A stretch of DNA of 63,307 bases, counting the filler, from Lenisia limosa (lineage: Eukaryota; Protista; Breviatea), in NCBI GenBank assembly GCA_001655205.1. It is 17 parts of 17 records of this genome, joined end to end, with 100 filler letters (N's around TTAATTAATTAA, not from the genome) between each part and the next. Parts side by side here need not be neighbours in the genome. Positions count along the whole stretch, not along the records: positions 52,901 to 56,597 come from LPNZ01001044.1; 16 more parts are not named here. One strand, 5' to 3'. Of this stretch, positions 4,791 to 57,431 are shown in pieces. A program made the position numbers and the translations under genes. The first letter of the stretch is position 1. Each line of letters starts with the position of its first letter. Below the pieces are notes generated by a model that saw only the letters and a list, made by a program, of their open reading frames with translations, made no database searches and was not told the DNA's origin.

Positions 4791-5652
4791 TTGAAAAAGC
4801 CACAGACCGTCCGCTCTGAAACTCAACCCACCCAACTGCGCCCACGAAGAAGCCCTCTCATGATCGGCAAGCCATCCACACCCCCTTCCGCCCCCAAAGC
4901 AAGAGGAATTAACCCCCCTGTTCCCAGAAAAACTGTTTCTCCCTCCATTTCCACTACTGAAAGTCCTCCGCCAACCCCTACTGCTCAAAAGCCAGCTGCA
5001 ACACAATTCCCATTATCCCAGGCAAACAACTGGAAACAACCGGTGAACGTCGATAAAGCGCCGAGACTGGCAAGGAGAAAGGAGCAGCGTCAACAGCAGA
5101 TAGAGAGCCTGAAGAGGAGTGAGAGGGAAGAGAAGGAGCGGAAGCAAAGAGACAAAGAAGCTAAACAAGACCTATACCCTCCTGTACCTCGGCGAAGAGC
5201 TTTGGAAGAAAAAAGTCCGCTACGGAGGAGCACGGAATATCGAAGCCCTCCGTCGCGATATCCAAAAAACACCTACGCTACTCCCGCTGTACCGCCTCGC
5301 GAAAAAAGCCCTCGTAGAAGCGGCGAAACTGAGTTCAAATACAAGGTTCGTCTTGACCAAAACAGTGATATACCGACTTTATCCAATCCACCTCCACCAC
5401 ACCCATCGCTCCACTCCGGCATACCCCCGCAAAAACAGCCTCCTCCTCCCCCCGGTTCTGTCGCCGCACAGTACTTTACGCAGCCAAAACCAAGGACGTT
5501 CCCGCCCGGACTCTTTGGGGCAGGCAACTCCCTTATGGGACCTCCTCCTCTCAACCCCCAAGTACCCCAGGTTCCCACAAACCCCGTCATCCCGTCGCCC
5601 GATTACCAGGTAATTCAGCGGCATTATCGTCCAACATTCCAGGACGCTCAGC
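4791..5652 (+). CDS. Proline/arginine-rich low-complexity protein (large exon, partial)
   Basis: About 860 nt open frame, GC-richer than flanks, with PxxP and poly-Pro tracts and a charged coiled segment; truncated by a gap. Confidence 0.65.
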
Positions 5653-8026: not shown

Positions 8027-9966
8027 AGGAGTGTTTCACATGAATGAACTGAAATGTGGTCATCCATTTTCCCATAACCCTTCCAATCAAACAACGTCAA
8101 AGACGCCGACTTGTCTACTCCGGCCAAAACCAAAGAAGTATCTGAAGTTGGGCATGGACATGGTAAGTAAACAAGTACTTGTTATCACTTTCTCAATCAA
8201 GAGCATATCAACCCTTATATATTGTAGTGCTTTACTTCTATCAACCTTACTATCTGGTTGGAACCTGTCTGCAAATATGCAATGCGATGCAACCAAAACT
8301 ACCCCTCAAATGAACCTCGATGTAGACGAAACTGCACTGGTTCAATCGATGGGTATCTTATTCTTATGCAGTATTTTTAAAACCATGGCCAAAGCCGAAT
8401 ACAAAATTAAGGTCAGTAGTGTACCGTATTAATTCCGGTGTTCAGATTGACCCAAATGCCAACCAGTGTTCCTGTCAAGAGTCTCGATGGCGAAATGGAT
8501 CCTGAACTCTGGTGACACCCCTGAAGAAGTTGAAAAGAATGATACTAGAGGTGACTTTGCTCAGTCTAATGCAATGTGTCAATGATCGAAAAATCTGCTA
8601 AGGGAATGTTTGTTTGCTTCAAAAAGTGCAACTACACACCCAAACCTAGTTGCTTATTCCTAACATTTCCAATGATAATTAAGCCTTCACCTTGGACATT
8701 TTAGGTGCTCAGTCGCTCTTCAAATGACGTTCTCCACACTATTCTGAAATTGGCTCCTGTAGATACCCAAAAATAGTGAGTTGATTTCCTCAGTTTTGTA
8801 ATGCCAAGTCAACTTTTCCAGTAAATATCAATGATTTTCAAGGATTTATCGAGCAATTTAGTCTTTTTTTCGATCCAAGTGAAGCCCTATTTACCGCATC
8901 TCATGTAGACTATTATATTTGTTTTCCAAAATATCTCACGTTTCACCATCAGATAGAATTGAAAATATGTGCATCTCCACAAAAAATAACCCTAGAGTAC
9001 AATACATACAAACTGACACCATGGAAGCTTTCACCAGATCTAAAATGTCAACTCTGTTTATCTCATAGAAAAGTATAATCCTGATCGCTAATAAAGGCAT
9101 ACCCGTCCCTATCCTCCCTGAGACTCATTGTTTTTTTTCAAAACAATCACAAACCCAGCATACCAGTAATCTATCCTCATTCAAAACCATTATCTATCTG
9201 ATAACTATGTACCATATACATGTACAGGGACTAGGATAAGTCTTGGCTGATTTGCTATGTGACTTCACAAGGAAAATTGGTCAACTCTTATCCATGTCAC
9301 TATATATCATATGCATACTAGCAAATCGATTGAGACTTATCCTCGTCACAATACAATCACAACCTGGACACTGTATAAAATCATAGCCCCAAAATACCAG
9401 TATTTATCCTCAGGGCGCAGGACCTGGATTGAGCCATCCGGGAATATCGACGTTTCCATGCCTTGGGCTAGGGGAGGGGGGTAAAATTGGAAATTGTATG
9501 AAATAACAAAATGCCCAAAATCAACTCTGTTGGTTGTCAAAAATGAAAAAGTATGAAACAACAAAAGAAAATATAAAAAAACGGGAGGAATTGCCGATTT
9601 CATGCCTTAGGTTGGGGAGGGGAAATGGTCAGATTAGGGATTATTATTATAAAAAAATAATAAAATGATGAAGTGTTATGATCCAGGAATTGAGGATCAA
9701 AACTTTTCTTGGTCACTGTGTATAGACAGCCAGCGATTCCATANNNNNNNNNNNNNNNNNNNNNNNNNNNNNNNNNNNNNNNNNNNNTTAATTAATTAAN
9801 NNNNNNNNNNNNNNNNNNNNNNNNNNNNNNNNNNNNNNNNNNNAACTGAAGCAGTGAAACATATATATTATATGATATATACAATACTATATCCTTATGC
9901 ATATGATATACTATAGTATGATATCAAATAAAAAAAATGAGATTGTCATGGTTTTTGACGGCTTAC

Positions 9967-12262
9967 AGTAGGGTTTTGTCTGTTGAGCTGATACACTGAT
10001 GAGAAGAGCTTGAAAGCCTGTTGGAACCTGGTCTCCTCCTCTGCAAACAATCAATTCTCAGAAGCTGGTTCGGGAATAATCAAGTTACTCAGGGACAAGC
10101 AACTTGAGCATTCCGTGTATTGAACTGTACAAAGCACCCCTCCCACCGTCCTCGCGAAGTGCCTGTCTGTTTAGCAGCAGAAGAGCCTTGCCACACATGG
10201 CACCTTCATTTGTCGGCTCCTTGGAGGAGGGGGTTACAACATTGGAACTTTTCCAAATCAATACTGAATAAAGGTATCAATCCCAGGCCGAAAAGGGGGG
10301 ATGGGGTATTTGGGGTGAAAAATCCAATTCACTAACATTTATATATCAATTTTTGACACATACCTTCTGGAGGGCCACATCAAAGTGCTCTCGAGCCTTG
10401 GTTCCTTCATCAAGACGAGACAGGCAAATGCTGATGTGTGAGTACGGCCTAAACAAAGACCAAAGTATGACATGAAACCTCTTTCCATGGGTTAAAAAAT
10501 GTGTCACAACTCATTCATACAAATTACGTACGATATGCACAGCTTTTGTTGACTCAATCGAAGCCCCAATACCCGAGAGCGACATGAACGTCTGCCGAGC
10601 AGTTTTCATGCTTGGTGATGGCACGCTGGAAGAACTTCATTGCCGAGCGGTGGTTATCTCGACGCATCGCAATGACTCCCTGGGGGTGGGGTAAGAGACG
10701 TAATGCAATGACTCCCTGGGGGTGGGGTAAGAGACGTAAAGCTGGAGCTGTGCAATGATTGAATGAGTAAACATATTCGGGAAGAAGCTTTGTCTTAAGG
10801 AGATCAAACACGATGAGTGACTTGACAAAGTGCTCACATAGATGTGATTTGAAAGAAGCAGCCACCAACCTTGCCAAAGAGGCCCATCAGAAGGTCAGGC
10901 TTGACCCTCAACGCAGTATCGAATTTCTCGAACGCCGCATCAAGCTCCTTCTGTGCAATGTTTAGGAATCCTGGGGGGGGGGGGNNNNNNNNNNNNNNNN
11001 NNNNNNNNNNNNNNNNNNNNNNNNNNNNNNNNNNNNNNNNNNNNNNNNNNNNNNNNNNNNNNNNNNNNNNNNNNNNNNNNNNNNNNNNNNNNNNNNNNNN
11101 NNNNNNAAGCCTGGTTCTCGAACCCCTTAAAGCTGTTTGTCAAAGAGTCTGCGTTTCGAATGTGGGCCTGGGACTGAAGAGGGTAAGTAAGGAGTTTTTC
11201 AAAAAAACTTTCCTTGAACGTTGAAAAAACGACAATAACAAAAGAGCAAGAGGCTAAGGCTTAATTCGGTTGACTACATGTTCTAAAACTGGTTGATGTA
11301 AGGGGGGAACATCTATACTTCGTGCCAAACGTTTCCAAGAAATTTTAACCCAAAACAATTTATAAAAAAGACAAACAAAGAACACTAATCCAACCTTTTC
11401 AATAAGAGAGGCTTGAACCTCATCCGATCTCATAACCATGGCGTTTTCTGGGAGGTCAGCAATCCAAACAAAACTTAAGATTGAGATACATATAATGTAG
11501 AATCCCCAAACGTGAGTAGTGGATGGCGAGAGAAAGCATGGCTTGGGCACGCTCGTTCTTAACTTCCTTCCTATCACGATACACACACAGCGCTTCGTAC
11601 ACATCTAGGTATCGTTAGGCCCTGGCTTTGGGACGTAATTGATTGTATCGCAAAATAACAATAAACTGTGGATGGGAAAGAGTGTCACCTAAAACCCCCA
11701 GTTAGGTTTTAATCAGAGATGTGGTCAGAATTAGGAATGGGTAACCTTTATTCATAAGAGAGAAGTTCAACAAGTCACATGGTCCTTTGGATATCATGAA
11801 AACATTGACTCCAACAATTAATAACAATTTAAAACAAATTTTTATGATCCAGTTTGCAATATATATCGAAAGAATCAACCAAATAGCGTGTCAAACACAA
11901 GTTTCAAAAAAAATGGCAATAACAGAAAGTCCTATGCACCCACCTTCTGAAACCGCTTTTTCCATCATTTCTTCATAGGCTTTGACCAGCCCCTTCTTTA
12001 AATAGAAATCCTAGGAAGTAAGGCCCACTATAGTGCATAAAGAGCCCTACAGCGATCTTTCTCCATTCCTGGAGCTTGACTCCTTCCTCCAAGAACATAG
12101 AGAGGAAGGTAGGGAGCGCATCTTCGCTAATTTCTTCTTCTGTAAGCTTCAACTCATCCTAAAGCGTGTTAGGGTGTACTGGGAGAGGCAACAACCTACT
12201 TTCTTCAGATGAATCACAACGGATTCCATTTCTTCCACTTCTTCTGCTGGAGCTGTGCCCAT
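9967..12262 (-). CDS. CTR9: RNA polymerase II-associated PAF1 complex TPR subunit, 5' part
   Basis: Spliced exons align in order to the CTR9 N-terminus: MGTAPAEE..., DELKLTEEEISEDALPTFLSMFLEEGVKLQEWRKIA, DFYLKKGLVKAYEEMMEKA, ...AAFEKFDTALRVKPDLLMGLFGK, GVIAMRRDNHRSAMKFFQRAITKHENCSADVHVAL, ...KAREHFDVALQK, GAMCGKALLLLN, QQAFKLFSSVYQLNRQNPT. The gene runs off the scaffold end. Confidence 0.85.
10669..10739. repeat. 36-bp tandem duplication spanning a CTR9 3' splice site
   Basis: GCAATGACTCCCTGGGGGTGGGGTAAGAGACGTAA x2, period 36. Confidence 0.95.
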
Positions 12263-13711: not shown

Positions 13712-14234
13712 GATGTGACGACAACTTATTGGATTAGTTTTGTTTTACATCAATTTATTAAAGAGATGGTGTGTGCTTAAATCTTCTCACACCCCCTCAA
13801 AATAATATAATTTTTTTTATCCCCCCCCCCCCCCNNNNNNNNNNNNNNNNNNNNNNNNNNNNNNNNNNNNNNNNNNNNNNNNNNNNNNNNNNNNNNNNNN
13901 NNNNNNNNNNNNNNNNNNNNNNNNNNNNNNNNNNNNNNNNNNNNNNNNNNNNNNNNNNNNNNNNNNNNNNNNNNNNNNNNNNNNNNNNNNNNNNNNNNNN
14001 NNNNNNNNNNNNNNNNNNNNNNNNNNNNNNNNNNNNNNNNNNNNNNNNNNNNNNTCTGAGGTATTAATAACTCTATTTGAGATCATACTCTGTTTGATAA
14101 ACATATATTACTCTATTTAGAATCCTCAGAGGCTTTTTACTGGAGGTAGTGCAGATCAGAGAGCATATGATATACAATCTAATAAGATATACAATATTAT
14201 TATCAATAATGAAGTATGCTTATCATCATTTTAG

Positions 14235-52685: not shown

Positions 52686-53269
52686 GCATACGGTTAAGTG
52701 TGTAGAAAAATGTAAACAGAGTCAACTACGGAAGACAAAACAAATGATTGTGAACCCCAAATAAATAAGGTGGAAAATGGTCAAAGGGGGGGGGGGGGGG
52801 NNNNNNNNNNNNNNNNNNNNNNNNNNNNNNNNNNNNNNNNNNNNTTAATTAATTAANNNNNNNNNNNNNNNNNNNNNNNNNNNNNNNNNNNNNNNNNNNN
52901 TAAAGCAAAGGAAATATTGAAAAGACTATTTGCGTAACGGTACTAATCACGAACTAGATAATCTGAAACTCCAAACAAAAAAACAAACAAAATAAAGCAG
53001 CAGCAAAAAACAAACCTTGAGGACACCTTGTCGTCAAAGAGGTTCTTAATGTTCAGTTTGATGATCAGGAAAATGCCAAGGGGGATACCTGCTCTGTTAG
53101 ATATACTATGTATGCTATCTAAATAGATAGCTGAACATCATCACTCCTATAAGAGAAATTGGAAAGAGACAAGGAAGAAATGATGATAATAATAAAAAGT
53201 GACATAGCAAGGACAAATTTCGCTGTGGTCCGTGTATCTGAGTGCAAAATAAAAAAATCAAGCCATTGA

Positions 53270-53960
53270 CTGTACGTGGAGATAGGGTATTACTTTGGCT
53301 TTTGAACTGTCTGAGTGGAATCTGTGAAAACAACTTGTCAAATATTTTAAAGGCCAAATTAGTCACAAATATAGGGCCAATAGATTTCGGGAGTGTCGCC
53401 AAATTAAAGGACTCGGTGGAGGAGGAGCAGGACTTCCGCCCCAAGACTCTAAGCACGCATCTTGGTTAGGGGTCACGGAAAACTATATTTATGTAATGTT
53501 CTATAGGTACAATGTGTGACAGCTCTGACTTTCTCTTATTTTCATCATTTCACATAATACATATGTATAAGTTGTATAGTATCTGTGTTATTTTATAAAT
53601 AGTATGCTGACCCTGTTTTAGGTGAAAACGACGTTTCATATGACCTTCAAGTCGAGCCGGAGGGAAAGCTGACGTTCTTTTCCCGCATGAACTTTTCCGC
53701 TGTAGACAATTTGGACAGGCTGCTTTAGACCCTCAAAGTTTGTTTAACAAACGGAATTCGTGTCATCTCAATTGGAATGGACGGGCACAAAAGCCATTAC
53801 CGTACGATCGAGGCGTATTGTTCATCAAAACTCTGGACGTTTCTGCGAGAGGTTGGGAACAACACCCGCCGTTCGTGGTCTCAATCTGTCCTGTCATCGC
53901 CACCACTTGACCCTCAATTCAAGGATGCTGCTTACGGAGATGGGCCTCAGACAGTTGGTA
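53270..53960 (+). CDS. Hypothetical protein exons
   Basis: GT-AG-bounded open segments DFGSVAKLKDSVEEEQDFRPKTLSTHL, GENDVSYDLQVEPEGKLTFFSRMNFSA, PLPYDRGVLFIKTLDVSAR; family unknown. Confidence 0.35.
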
Positions 53961-54432
53961 AAGTTCTGGCACATTTAACGTTGAGATTTGAGCTCTTATT
54001 GTTTTAAAAATATCATAAATCGAATAAAAACATGGCGTGGTTTTACTAACCTATATCATATTCAAGTCAATCAATGTCACAAATGTTGCTGAATTCCAGC
54101 CTCAAGAGAGGGTTCCAATTGTTGCAACACACCATTTCAATATGGACTTGAATGTTGGCTTTTCTGACTAGGGATCAAAAAGGGGATCAATTCGGGCTCA
54201 TAGCCGACGGCGCACTTTCCGTGACCGAGACAAGCAGAACTATACGGGCGTGTATAATTAATCACGCATTTCAAACAGTTGATTTTTTTATTGTTTAGTC
54301 TGTTAGAAAAAAATATTTTACTGTGATTCCTAACACTTTCATTTTGACTCCGCGGCAAAAAAAAAAGAAGATAAGAATAGATACAGGAGACTCAAATATT
54401 TAACTTTGTCGTAATCCCCCCTTGCTACTCAC

Positions 54433-56400
54433 CAAGGACATATACGATCAAGCCTATCAAGGCTACAGGAAGCCACTTGAGATGAACTGACGCATAGCAG
54501 CGAATACTGGGATCTGAGGCATCAGTAAGGGGGGGGGGGACTGAACAGAGGCTACGATATACTGTGACAATGGTAAGTTTTTGACCGAATTTCAATATAA
54601 TATTCCAAGGAAAGTTTTTGTAGTACTTAGCACTCCCCGTCCAGCCTCACGAGCGTCAAGGGTGAACACGCCATGGCCCTGGTCGGTGCAGTCAAAGTAC
54701 TGGAGTACGGAATATGCCGCTGGGAGGTATATTACAACCGTCATGATCGTCAGCGTCCGAACAAGCGCATTTCTAAGGAGGGGGATTGGTGTAAAAATGA
54801 CAAGTTTAGGAAACAAAACACAAAATCAATTCCATTGGGTTAAACAAAAAAAAAAACAAANNNNNNNNNNNNNNNNNNNNNNNNNNNNNNNNNNNNNNNN
54901 NNNNNNNNNNNNNNNNNNNNNNNNNNNNNNNNNNNNNNNNNNNNNNNAATTACGAAACAAATTAGTGAAAGAAGGAATATGATCCTCATTTCTATGATAC
55001 GCCGCATATCATGAAAGGGCAAGAATTATATGATTACATTACGCTGCTTCATGAAGAATAAAATAGTCTCATATTTTATAGTCATAATAGCATCATTTTT
55101 TGATAATTATTAGGTAGTCATCTCTTTGATCATTATACTTCCCACAAGACCAGCCAACTTCAGAGCTTCATCCCAGGTCTTTGTTCCCGTGAGGGTGTGA
55201 AGCTGGTTTTTCATCAGAATTCTGCCAAGGAAGTAGAGGCAGATCACGACAAGGGCAATAATAAATGGAAGCAGAAGCTGGAGATTTGAGTCAGTGACAA
55301 AGGAGCTGGGGGTATTGTGAGACAAATAATGAAGGGCATCTCGAAGATCAATTATAAATATTCCACTGTTACTTATTACCTGAGAAAAAAATTAATAAGA
55401 TGACTAACCTTGATAACGAGGGTGGCGAAGAACGAGAGTGAATGGTGAATGGTGCACTCTGGGGCAGAGAGCTACGGAATAACAAGGAAGATAATTCAAT
55501 ATCTTTCGTAAATGGACTTCGTAATCTTTCAAGCTATTGGTAAGTGGAGGTGAGGGAGGGGTTCACAGAGTTATTTAGGTTGTATTTATATATGATCTCT
55601 TTAAAAAACATCACACCTGTACGTTAAAGTTGAGAATGCTGAGAGAATTGAGAATGAAAGCTACTTCAGTTGGCCAATTCAGGTCGAACTTGCCATATAA
55701 GGCAGCTGCCTAAAGCGGGTAAGGCTAATAAATTGTATCATATCTTCCAATAGTATGATGAGAAATGTAAAAATGTAATGATTCACCGACACTGTCAGTG
55801 ATACCTATTGATGGATTCTCGCGTGGTACCAACGTACCAAAGAGAGGGGAAATAAAACAAGGTATCTGGTCAAAGCCGTCCACATCATCACGCTTATAAG
55901 AGATACTGGATTATAGTATATTACTATTAATTTACCCAATCATTTGCCTAAAACTCTGTGCACAGTTATCTGCCAGCATACCTGGAGGAAAAGGAAGAGG
56001 ATGCGAACAGAGCTCCATCTGTACAGTAATAATAATAAAAATAAATAATAATAATAATAACTACATGGTAGATAGTACACTGTTTGCAGTATATAAAAAC
56101 TATCATCAGACTCAAAACTATCATCACAAATGTCTTAGGCAGTTTGAAAACCCAAAATTTCTTGAAAAAGAACAATACCATCTAATGGCAACAAAATTTA
56201 ATATCATCTTCTATCCTATGTTATGATCTCATTAGTTGTGTTATTTTAGATGCACCATGAAAGCGACGCAAGCCATTCGAACCTGTTGTTCAACGAGGGG
56301 TTCACAGACGACACGAAGACCACCAGGGACATAATAATCACCAAGATTACCCCGAGAGGAAGCAGTAAGTTGGCCACTAGACGCTTGAGGAAAAACTCAA
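54433..56400 (-). CDS. Polytopic (7TM-like) membrane protein of a widespread protist type, partial
   Basis: LLLPLGVILVIIMSLVVFVSSVNPSLNNR/WSSVRILFLFLQ/AAALYGKFDLNWPTEVAFILNSLSILNFN/LSAPECT../..LLPFIIALVVICLYFLG../NALVRTLTIMTVVIYLPAAYSVLQYFDCTDQGHGVFTLDA/HPSIRCYASVHLKWLPVALIGLIVYVLG: the WP..FNFN..PEC and F.C..L...PSI.C..H pattern; junction phases compatible where checked. Confidence 0.75.
55846..55981 (-). repeat. Repeat family 1 copy whose terminus forms a predicted 5' splice site
   Basis: On -: exon ..TTCCTCCAG|GTATGCTGGCAGATAACTGTGCACAGAGTTTTAGGCAAATGATTGGG..; the element starts exactly at the GT. Confidence 0.88.
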
Positions 56401-57431
56401 CTTAAAATGGGGACATATTTTAATGAAGGCCAATTCTTCAGACTAAAAACTCGAAAATTAAAAACACATTGCAAGAAAAGATGAATTGCACAGATCCCTT
56501 GGGCTGGAAAACTGGAAAAGAGCAAGATGAGAAAACCAAGAAAACATCGTATTATTATATAGTAGGACATATAGGTGTGTATGTGTGAATGTTTGGGNNN
56601 NNNNNNNNNNNNNNNNNNNNNNNNNNNNNNNNNNNNNNNNNTTAATTAATTAANNNNNNNNNNNNNNNNNNNNNNNNNNNNNNNNNNNNNNNNNNNNAGC
56701 AATTGCAAATGGTTCAGTCTCAGTTCGCCTGCCACCCCAACTAGCATCAAACCCTTCCTGCAATCTTCTTCTTGGTTCTCTTCCAAAATGCCGTGAGTGA
56801 TGATGATGTTGATATTGGGGATGTTGACGATGATGTTTCAGTTCCGTGCTTCTGCAAATCTTTTCCTTTATGTTCACCCCCACCCCCCAATGCTTTGTTT
56901 TGTTGTTCTCAACCCTCGTGTGTTGTCAGCCAACAGAGGCTTTCTTGTTTCATAAATTTCTCAATTTCGAGCGGTGGTGGGACTCTTCAAAGGCTGGCTA
57001 GGACTTGATTTTGTTTTTGTGTTTTTGTCATCTGGCTTTTGTCTAGCGTTGGTTGCTCATGTTTGTTTTTGCTTGTTTTTTTGTTTTTTTGCAGTTTTAG
57101 ATTATTCNNNNNNNNNNNNNNNNNNNNNNNNNNNNNNNNNNNNNNNNNNNNNNNNNNNNNNNNNNNNNNNNNNNNNNNNNNNNNNNNNNNNNNNNNNNNN
57201 NNNNNNNNNNNNNNNNNNNNNNNNNNNNNNNNNNNNNNNNNNNNNNNNNNNNNNGACCAATCAACGTCAAAGTGGGGTCAAAGGACATTTTGATGAAGAA
57301 ACTGAGAGAAAGAGGCAAATTTGTTGTTTTCACCTCGTGTTGCTGCCAATAGCGTTAATTTTGGGCTTTTTTTTGTTGTTTCGTAATTTTCTTATTCCCC
57401 CCTTCTCCTCTAAATTAGTAACCCCCCATAG

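Follow-up and report, generated by a model that had tools for sequence, protein, structure and literature searches.

Introduction

Among the candidate sources of new spliceosomal introns, introners are at present the foremost. These intron-generating transposons are described from Micromonas, Aureococcus, dinoflagellates and about 200 other species (Gozashti et al. 2022, PMC9860276; 2025, PMC12130899), and ~72% of their families belong to no assigned transposon class. Screens for introners ask that the similarity between copies reach both intron boundaries (within ~5 exonic or 10 intronic bases) and remove transposons that lie in a pre-existing intron (PMC9860276, PMC12130899); a family must also count four or more similar introns whose genes belong to different paralogy groups (Gozashti et al. 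2022/2025). The secondary insertion of miniature inverted-repeat transposable elements (MITEs) into pre-existing introns is the common case, and it is filtered out in both studies (PMC9860276, PMC12130899). Here we describe a short repeat at positions 55846-55981 of a 63,307-nucleotide (nt) window, the whole joined stretch of DNA from the Lenisia limosa assembly GCA_001655205.1, in which an initial annotation had seen a candidate introner or a member of a splice-site-donating family. The sequence analysed in detail was window 52901-56597 (from LPNZ01001044.1), with an N gap at 54871-54947. On balance, we favor the view that the repeat sits at the start of an older intron, where its GTATGC has replaced the donor, and that it did not create this intron.

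A high-copy repeat in the window and in a related organism

Copy number was estimated from DNA run X1, in which 98% of the scaffold's sampled words are present, and expression from run X2, poly(A) RNA of the same study, the contig sets being of 195,906 DNA contigs and 180,449 RNA contigs. With respect to the single-copy baseline of run X1 (summed word depth 35, from flanking sequence), the bin 55877-56000 reached 53,336, ~1,500 times the single-copy level, and the neighboring bin 55753-55876 reached 4,529; the repeat status of the sequence is directly established by these depths. A total of 1,176 contigs aligned to the window piece (51 at 99% identity or more, 286 at 95-99% and 839 at 90-95%), some of which match the A-rich stretch 52901-53024 rather than the element. 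Many of the alignments run from 55862/55863 to 55905-55920, and this 59-nt core (55862-55920, minus strand) is the most abundant part, with copies that we put, from the reads and contigs, at roughly a thousand or more. At 55948 the depth drops to ~4,400, showing that the 5' third of the element is common to fewer copies; this donor-side third is perhaps present in a hundred or more copies at 90% identity or above.

A protein search with a 40-residue exon of the window gene led to two exon-sized products, P0004 and P0005, at ~50% identity. The contigs that bear them, L001 and L002, both come from one ENA metagenome assembly, from a related organism. On L001 there is a paralogous gene, and the element is present in three copies: one with an intact 5' end (14136-13980, minus strand, the nhmmer span with exon flank included, its start being at 14123), one without the 5' half in the interior of an intron (11948-12068, plus strand) and one between two convergent genes (13344-13225, minus strand). 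The ~140-bp repeat that had been noted at 55846-55981 is therefore borne out, both by its depth and by these related copies. The window copy, of what we call family 1, runs on the minus strand from GTATGC through the core to CCAGATACC and then into a T/C-rich tail, as supported by depth, contigs and the L001 copies. At ~120-136 nt, non-coding and in high copy number, the element agrees with MITEs in size, coding status and abundance.

The element was found in a handful of the RNA contigs and in up to ~1,000 of the DNA contigs. This strong depletion from RNA agrees with copies that are intronic or intergenic, and it does not discriminate further. Rfam and tRNA searches gave no match to the element, and its longest open frame had no homologue among 5.8 billion proteins. 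Exact-pattern scans detected no element copies in JGI metagenome contigs and no genuine copy in IMG/VR, where a single 19-base match, inside a GC-rich phage recombinase gene, was dismissed as chance.

The element begins where an exon of the host gene ends

An 843-nt RNA contig of run X2 aligns to the window in six blocks (55696-55617, 55471-55409, 55277-55159, 54772-54651, 54513-54433 and 53088-53011), directly establishing the host gene, its minus strand and its downstream splicing. The five introns that join these blocks measure 145, 131, 386, 137 and 1,344 nt and are all GT..AG on the minus strand, and the spliced blocks form a single open frame coding for a multi-pass membrane segment. Upstream of the RNA contig, the frame continues only by way of exons 55709-55617, 56018-55982 and one ending at 56283. 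Of the 93-nt exon (55617-55709, minus strand; AAALYGKFDLNWP...NFNVQ), the RNA contig covers 55617-55696 and splices on, and exons of the same length are present in L001 and L002. The predicted 37-nt exon (55982-56018, minus strand; (R)WSSVRILFLFLQ) lies outside the RNA contig and aligns to ARWAALRILVAFIQ of L001. It ends ...CTCCAG in phase 0 and is followed immediately by GTATGCTGGCA, the 5' terminus of the element (55971-55981, minus strand), whose first two bases are the predicted 5' splice site.

The intron predicted from this junction spans 55710-55981 on the minus strand (272 nt, phase 0, GT..AG), as suggested by frame continuity and by a position common to the L001 and L002 introns. Reading through from the 37-nt exon into the element meets a stop after 13 codons, and the predicted upstream exons stay in frame only if 55981 is spliced to 55710. 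Because the RNA stops short of this intron, use of the 55981 donor is inferred rather than observed; the reading frame, the read-through stop and the gap-free paralogue alignment all point to it. The earlier suggestion that the first bases of the element adjoin an in-frame exon as its GT holds up on the frame and on that alignment. RNA coverage is nil at 55697-55861 and 56001-56597, and a few RNA contigs hold other copies of the element. Donors elsewhere in the host gene are loosely constrained (GTGTGA, GTTAGT, GTTGGC).

The host exons are too short for a Pfam assignment, none being returned from them, and the family of the window gene was named through its paralogue L001, which carries DUF7630, a Cys-rich, ephrin-receptor-like ectodomain. 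Genes of this family combine the DUF7630/ephrin-receptor-like ectodomain with a multi-pass region, and in the Atlas they are commonest in haptophytes and other protists.

The intron is shared with paralogues that lack the element

The predicted proteins of the window gene and of L001 are 37% identical across 225 residues, and their alignment is free of gaps near the junction. A phase-0 intron interrupts the two genes at one and the same residue, between ...F(L/I)Q and the three residues before LYG, and in both the next exon is exactly 93 nt long and is followed by another common phase-0 intron. The counterpart in L001 is an intron of 157 nt (9231-9387); that in L002 ends at base 103, with its acceptor at the same position (...ACTCCCCCAG|ISGLYG). 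The common position of the intron is directly established by this alignment. Nothing related to the element was found in the L001 and L002 introns. The paralogues thus share the intron without the element, and at 37% protein identity they are far more diverged than the element copies, the window copy being 90-99% similar to hundreds of copies in its genome; because of this, as judged from the sequence comparison, the intron must be older than the insertion.

Consistent with this, the element makes up the first 136 of the 272 intron bases only. The remainder (55710-55845, minus strand) is directly seen to be single copy (depth 35) and has no similarity to the element, and we take it to be the old intron. 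The idea that this 3' half is itself a second, decayed copy was rejected, as global and local alignment scores were no better than those of shuffles. Just past the tail of the element stands G|GTACGT (55838-55832, the GTACGT itself at 55837-55832), and 128 nt separate this point from the acceptor, compared with 131-145 nt in the short introns of the gene. This arrangement suggests that an old intron starting with GTACGT received an insertion of ~144 nt exactly at its junction.

With respect to what introner screens look for, the similarity between copies reaches the 5' boundary (intron base 1) and does not reach the 3' boundary; the same is true of the L001 copy at 14123, where ~46 nt of predicted intron lie beyond the element. 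Absence of the intron from paralogues is also looked for, and L001 and L002 share this phase-0 intron. The initial annotation had named a conserved intron independent of the repeat as evidence that would speak against an introner, and such an intron is precisely what L001 and L002 contain. Its claim is therefore not supported as regards an introner at this locus; the splice-site-donating part of it is supported, GTATGC being element sequence found at exon ends.

A second intact copy follows an apparent exon end in the relative

The L001 copy at 14123 starts with GTATGCGG right after an apparent exon end (...HYFYDSL|), in a different gene and with an unrelated flank. Codon statistics, trained on 1.4 kb of confident exons, favor the downstream frame ...LITTQILPVSTPV... 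of this gene by ~15 bits, and the favored frame requires an intron that begins at or near the 14123 GT and extends ~46 nt past the element. We rejected a reading in which the intron is complete and stops at the element's own ...ATATATAGACAG, since the other downstream frame is the one favored by ~15 bits. Only two 5'-intact copies at an intron start could be reached, namely those in the window gene and in this minus-strand gene of L001.

A degenerate fragment of the family was also detected in sense orientation inside the 1,344-nt intron of the host gene (53133-53163, minus strand; 86% identity over 29 nt, nhmmer E = 0.012). Its local alignment score was 21, with shuffles averaging 14.8 and reaching up to 23, and it is possibly part of a wider remnant at 53110-53219. 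Counting the window and L001 together, all four intronic copies or fragments (4/4) are in sense orientation, and those lying in intron interiors (L001 11948-12068 and window 53133-53163) are without an intact GTATGC end.

Two short sequences resemble the ends of the element. In L001, a 60-nt intron of the paralogue (8878-8937, plus strand) starts with GTATGCTTTCCTGGCA and ends with CCATAGCAAAATAATTGTTTTAG, which recall both ends of the element; it may be a miniature derivative that makes up the whole intron, the similarity being too short to score. In the long intron of the window gene, the 20-base string GTATGCTGACCCTGTTTTAG (53602-53621, plus strand, antisense to the gene) resembles the two ends joined without the body, and may reflect a deletion derivative, the footprint of an excision or chance.

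Ends of the element and its probable class

The alignment of copies places the family start at GTATGC(T)GG, with unrelated flanks upstream. Because two copies in unrelated genes share GTATGC while their upstream flanks differ, GTATGC is, on this alignment, part of the element and not of the flank. Near the 3' side, CAGATAC is conserved in all four aligned copies, including the three of L001, and it is followed by the tail CCTTRTTTTATTTCYC in three of the four. The T/C-rich, polypyrimidine-like tail of the window copy (55846-55860, minus strand) is conserved in L001 11948-12068 and 14136-13980; the tract reads CCTTGTTTTATTTCCCC in the 55846-55981 copy and CCTTATTTTATTTCTC in a contig copy of the related organism. 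As the tail recurs across the aligned copies, we consider it part of the element. The pyrimidine tract described in the initial annotation is thus present, in the window as in L001, but in the 55846 copy it contains no AG.

In other genomic copies, an A-rich run on the plus strand beyond 55862 corresponds to a T-rich tail in the donor orientation, and most copies elsewhere seem, from the contigs, to carry longer (TTTG)n-like tails. Window 52901-53024 is itself A-rich and of low complexity (rich in T on the gene strand, where the next intron begins), with a summed DNA depth of 25,706, and contigs join this stretch directly to the element core.

The 5' terminus has a candidate inverted-repeat partner, TGACCAGATACC, at 55861-55872 (minus strand). 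The conserved T-rich tail lies outside this 3' repeat, which shows that the inverted repeat is not strictly terminal, and shuffled sequences fold as well as the whole element does. A Tc1/mariner-like TA duplication was rejected, as the sequence past the 3' inverted repeat is conserved between copies. An origin as a short interspersed nuclear element derived from an RNA gene was likewise rejected, there being no Rfam or tRNA match and the T-rich tail lying at the wrong end for a poly(A) retroposon.

Proposed history of the intron and alternative explanations

In the history that we favor, a short non-coding mobile repeat of about a thousand copies, most likely a non-autonomous DNA transposon, would have an intron-like polarity, with GTATGC at one end and a branch-point-like TTGAC and a T/C-rich tail at the other. 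One copy, oriented in sense, would have inserted precisely on the 5' junction of a pre-existing phase-0 intron, about doubling it, from ~128-136 nt to 272 nt. Its GTATGC would now act as the 5' splice site, and the old acceptor, and probably the old branch point too, would still be used. The transposon nature of the element and this order of events, insertion into an old intron, are what we infer from the data above. A random intronic insertion would hit a junction about once in 130 events, and both of the intact 5' ends observed (2/2) are at exon junctions; the association of the GTATGC end with donors seems genuine. It might have arisen by insertion targeted to AG|GT-like sites, or by selection that spares intact sense copies in genes only where their donor can replace the authentic one.

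Several observations weigh against this history. The 55982|55709 junction is not crossed by RNA, the RNA contig ending at 55696, 13 bases before the acceptor. For the minus-strand gene of L001, the exons are predictions that draw only on open frames and codon statistics, and searches of Pfam, the PDB and the Atlas gave no homologue of this gene. The exact 5' and 3' limits of the family depend on two 5'-intact copies and on alignment break points. The short imperfect inverted repeat reported initially does match at 10 of 12 positions with one gap (GGTATGCTGGCA versus GGTAT-CTGGTCA), but 217 of 2,000 shuffles match equally well (p about 0.1). No convincing target-site duplication was found around the window copy, where the only candidate is a 4-base GGTA direct repeat (55982-55979 and 55838-55835); its two occurrences flank a 144-nt segment, and it could equally be the old donor. 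The L001 copies have no comparable flanking direct repeat. Finally, L001 and L002 offer paralogues, or genes from a related organism, in place of orthologous empty sites: a search with the 74-aa exon frame found no empty-site orthologue, and a profile of the exon family recovered P0004 and P0005 only.

Other explanations were weighed against the same evidence. We regard it as unlikely that the repeat is an ordinary intronic transposon, unrelated to splicing, that coincides with a donor by chance. Short repeats do fill the introns of this lineage, other copies lie in intron interiors or between genes, and donors in the host gene are so weakly constrained that many GTs could serve. Such a passenger would however land exactly on the junction in only about 1 of 130 intronic insertions, and the sole other 5'-intact copy within reach also directly follows an exon end; moreover, the layout from a GT end to a pyrimidine tail and the sense orientation of four intronic copies out of four are unexpected for a neutral element. 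A true introner event, in which insertion into a continuous exon made the intron by recruiting an AG 136 nt downstream, appears quite improbable to us, even though donor, branch-point-like motif and pyrimidine tract stand in the right order and in sense orientation, and known introner families can bring a 5' site and co-opt a 3' site. Position and phase of the intron are common to three paralogous genes, two of which are without the element, and the similarity stops short of the 3' boundary. In addition, 136 nt of exon would have had to be intronized, yet the protein alignment shows no loss of residues.

The break of both run X1 Logan contigs within the element, at 55900 and 55891, with an overlap of just 10 bases, together with the existence of about a thousand element copies, raises the question of an assembly artefact, in which two unrelated loci would be joined inside the repeat and exon 55982-56018 would be foreign to the downstream exons. 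The two sides of the element code for adjacent parts of a protein, however, and because both align colinearly with one L001 exon pair, we consider the join across the element to be sound and an artefact very improbable. We give an equally slight chance to the absence of any mobile element, with lineage-specific splice-signal motifs recurring by convergence. The introns of the relative do share end motifs (a G-run after GT, a T-rich stretch and a C-run before AG), but the most abundant part of the repeat is the 59-nt internal core at 55862-55920 and not its ends, copies also occur in intron interiors and between genes (L001 13344-13225, an intergenic copy of conserved full length, points away from convergence), and identities of 85-99% over 60-130 nt far exceed what motif convergence produces. 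Insertion of the repeat at the start of an older intron is thus the explanation that we retain.

Other repeats and introns in the window and in the relative

In many introns the final 60-140 nt consist of a second repeat family, whose end falls exactly on the acceptor AG. The consensus of this family reads ...CAGAAGCGACTGGCCTGG ... GCCAACAGAGTTGATTTTGG ... CATAAATTTTCCAATTTTACTCC, a C-run and AG, with ...TTTTCCAATTTTACTCC before the C-run and AG. At least nine copies occur in L001 and L002, in at least three genes, several of them unrelated; those listed are at L001 14338-14197, 12375-12483, 9962-10084 and 14685-14623, and at L002 1077-1231, 2127-2268, 679-790 and 3744-3810. A model built from the L001 and L002 copies alone finds window 54778-54859 (minus strand) with E = 1.9e-6, a copy that lies 5 nt from the acceptor of the 386-nt intron. 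Based on these alignments, the second family is a candidate acceptor-carrying, introner-like family, and it raises the prior for splice-signal-bearing repeats that shape introns in this lineage. The window gap at 54871-54947 is bridged by a run X1 contig with just 35 bases, including GTCGCTTCTG, the reverse complement of the second-family motif CAGAAGCGAC.

More tentatively, modular transposons that carry splice signals may be present in this lineage and may make or reshape introns genome-wide, with one family for donors and another for acceptors, a possibility that we rate clearly below even. The donor family, which would bear a pyrimidine tract as well, would then favor AG|GT-like sites for its insertion, 5' splice junctions that already exist among them. 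If this is true, many introns in the lineage, including whole-intron copies elsewhere, would be introner-derived, and insertion targeted to donor junctions would be a mode that the introner literature we compared does not describe.

Many introns start with GT and a G-run (e.g. GTGGGGGAGTGGGGG) and end with a C-run before AG (CACTCCCCCAG), so that their ends resemble inverted repeats. G-run starts were seen at L001 10218, 10550, 11291 and 12326, C-run ends at L001 10815, 11145 and 12476 and in L002 1-103, and the intron at window 54514-54650 belongs to the same set. Either splice signals particular to the lineage or the termini of a further intron-forming element could account for these ends. 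Introns of the relative also contain two more palindromic MITE-like families, one with termini GGGCTTCCC.../...GGGAAGCCC (L001 10567-10675 and 11832-11919, L002 419-518) and one with termini GGGATAAGTCTTGAC.../...GTCAAGACTTATCCC (L001 8099-8181 and 13642-13724, L002 2484-2567). At its end, contig L002 carries a tandem array with a period of ~63 nt (5185-5473).

Two single-copy introns of the window gene have no counterpart in at least one paralogue. The 1,344-nt intron (53089-54432, minus strand) is absent from L001 and L002, which read through ...GIP..., and the 264-nt intron (56019-56282, minus strand) is absent from L001. The 1,344-nt intron has GGT at both junctions, leaving the RNA joint ambiguous by 3 bases, and holds GC-richer sequence resembling an open reading frame at 53600-54250 and two small RNA contigs. 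It may represent a recent intron gain.

Comparison with known systems

Among described arrangements, the [D1,2] stwintrons of Hypoxylaceae (PMC12403724, PMC9024468) are alike in having an intron-like unit at an older donor, here followed by the donor-like GTACGT. They differ in that the window unit precedes G1, instead of lying between G1 and T2, and is without a terminal AG. We rejected a [D1,2] stwintron for this locus, as the segment before GTACGT ends ...CTCTTTG without AG and two-step splicing cannot rebuild the outer donor.

The 5'-site introner of Chrysochromulina sp. (Fig. 2C, PMC9860276) resembles the window element in that the element gives the GT and the AG comes from outside. In the Chrysochromulina sp. 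type, the AG is provided by a 4-bp target-site duplication at the element end after insertion into an exon, whereas for the window element the AG lies 136 nt off, in an older intron. Compared with introners in general, the element is likewise short, non-autonomous, high-copy, in sense orientation in genes, AT-richer than exons, depleted from RNA and provided with a terminal splice signal. It differs from them in forming only the 5' half of its intron, in the greater age of that intron and in a similarity that falls short of the 3' boundary. These are the very features on which introner screens reject candidates. The locus also carries a warning: for calling an introner, it is insufficient that a repeat end and a splice site coincide.

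Secondary insertion of MITEs in introns (PMC9860276, PMC12130899) is matched in that part of the intron is repeat and the rest unique, and in that the paralogue introns are without the repeat. Unlike ordinary cases of this kind, the element lies exactly on the exon-intron junction, replacing the donor, in both 5'-intact copies (2/2), a placement suggesting targeted insertion or a strong selective filter. One more introner family would be an incremental addition; the window locus would show that a splice-competent transposon can remodel introns without creating them.

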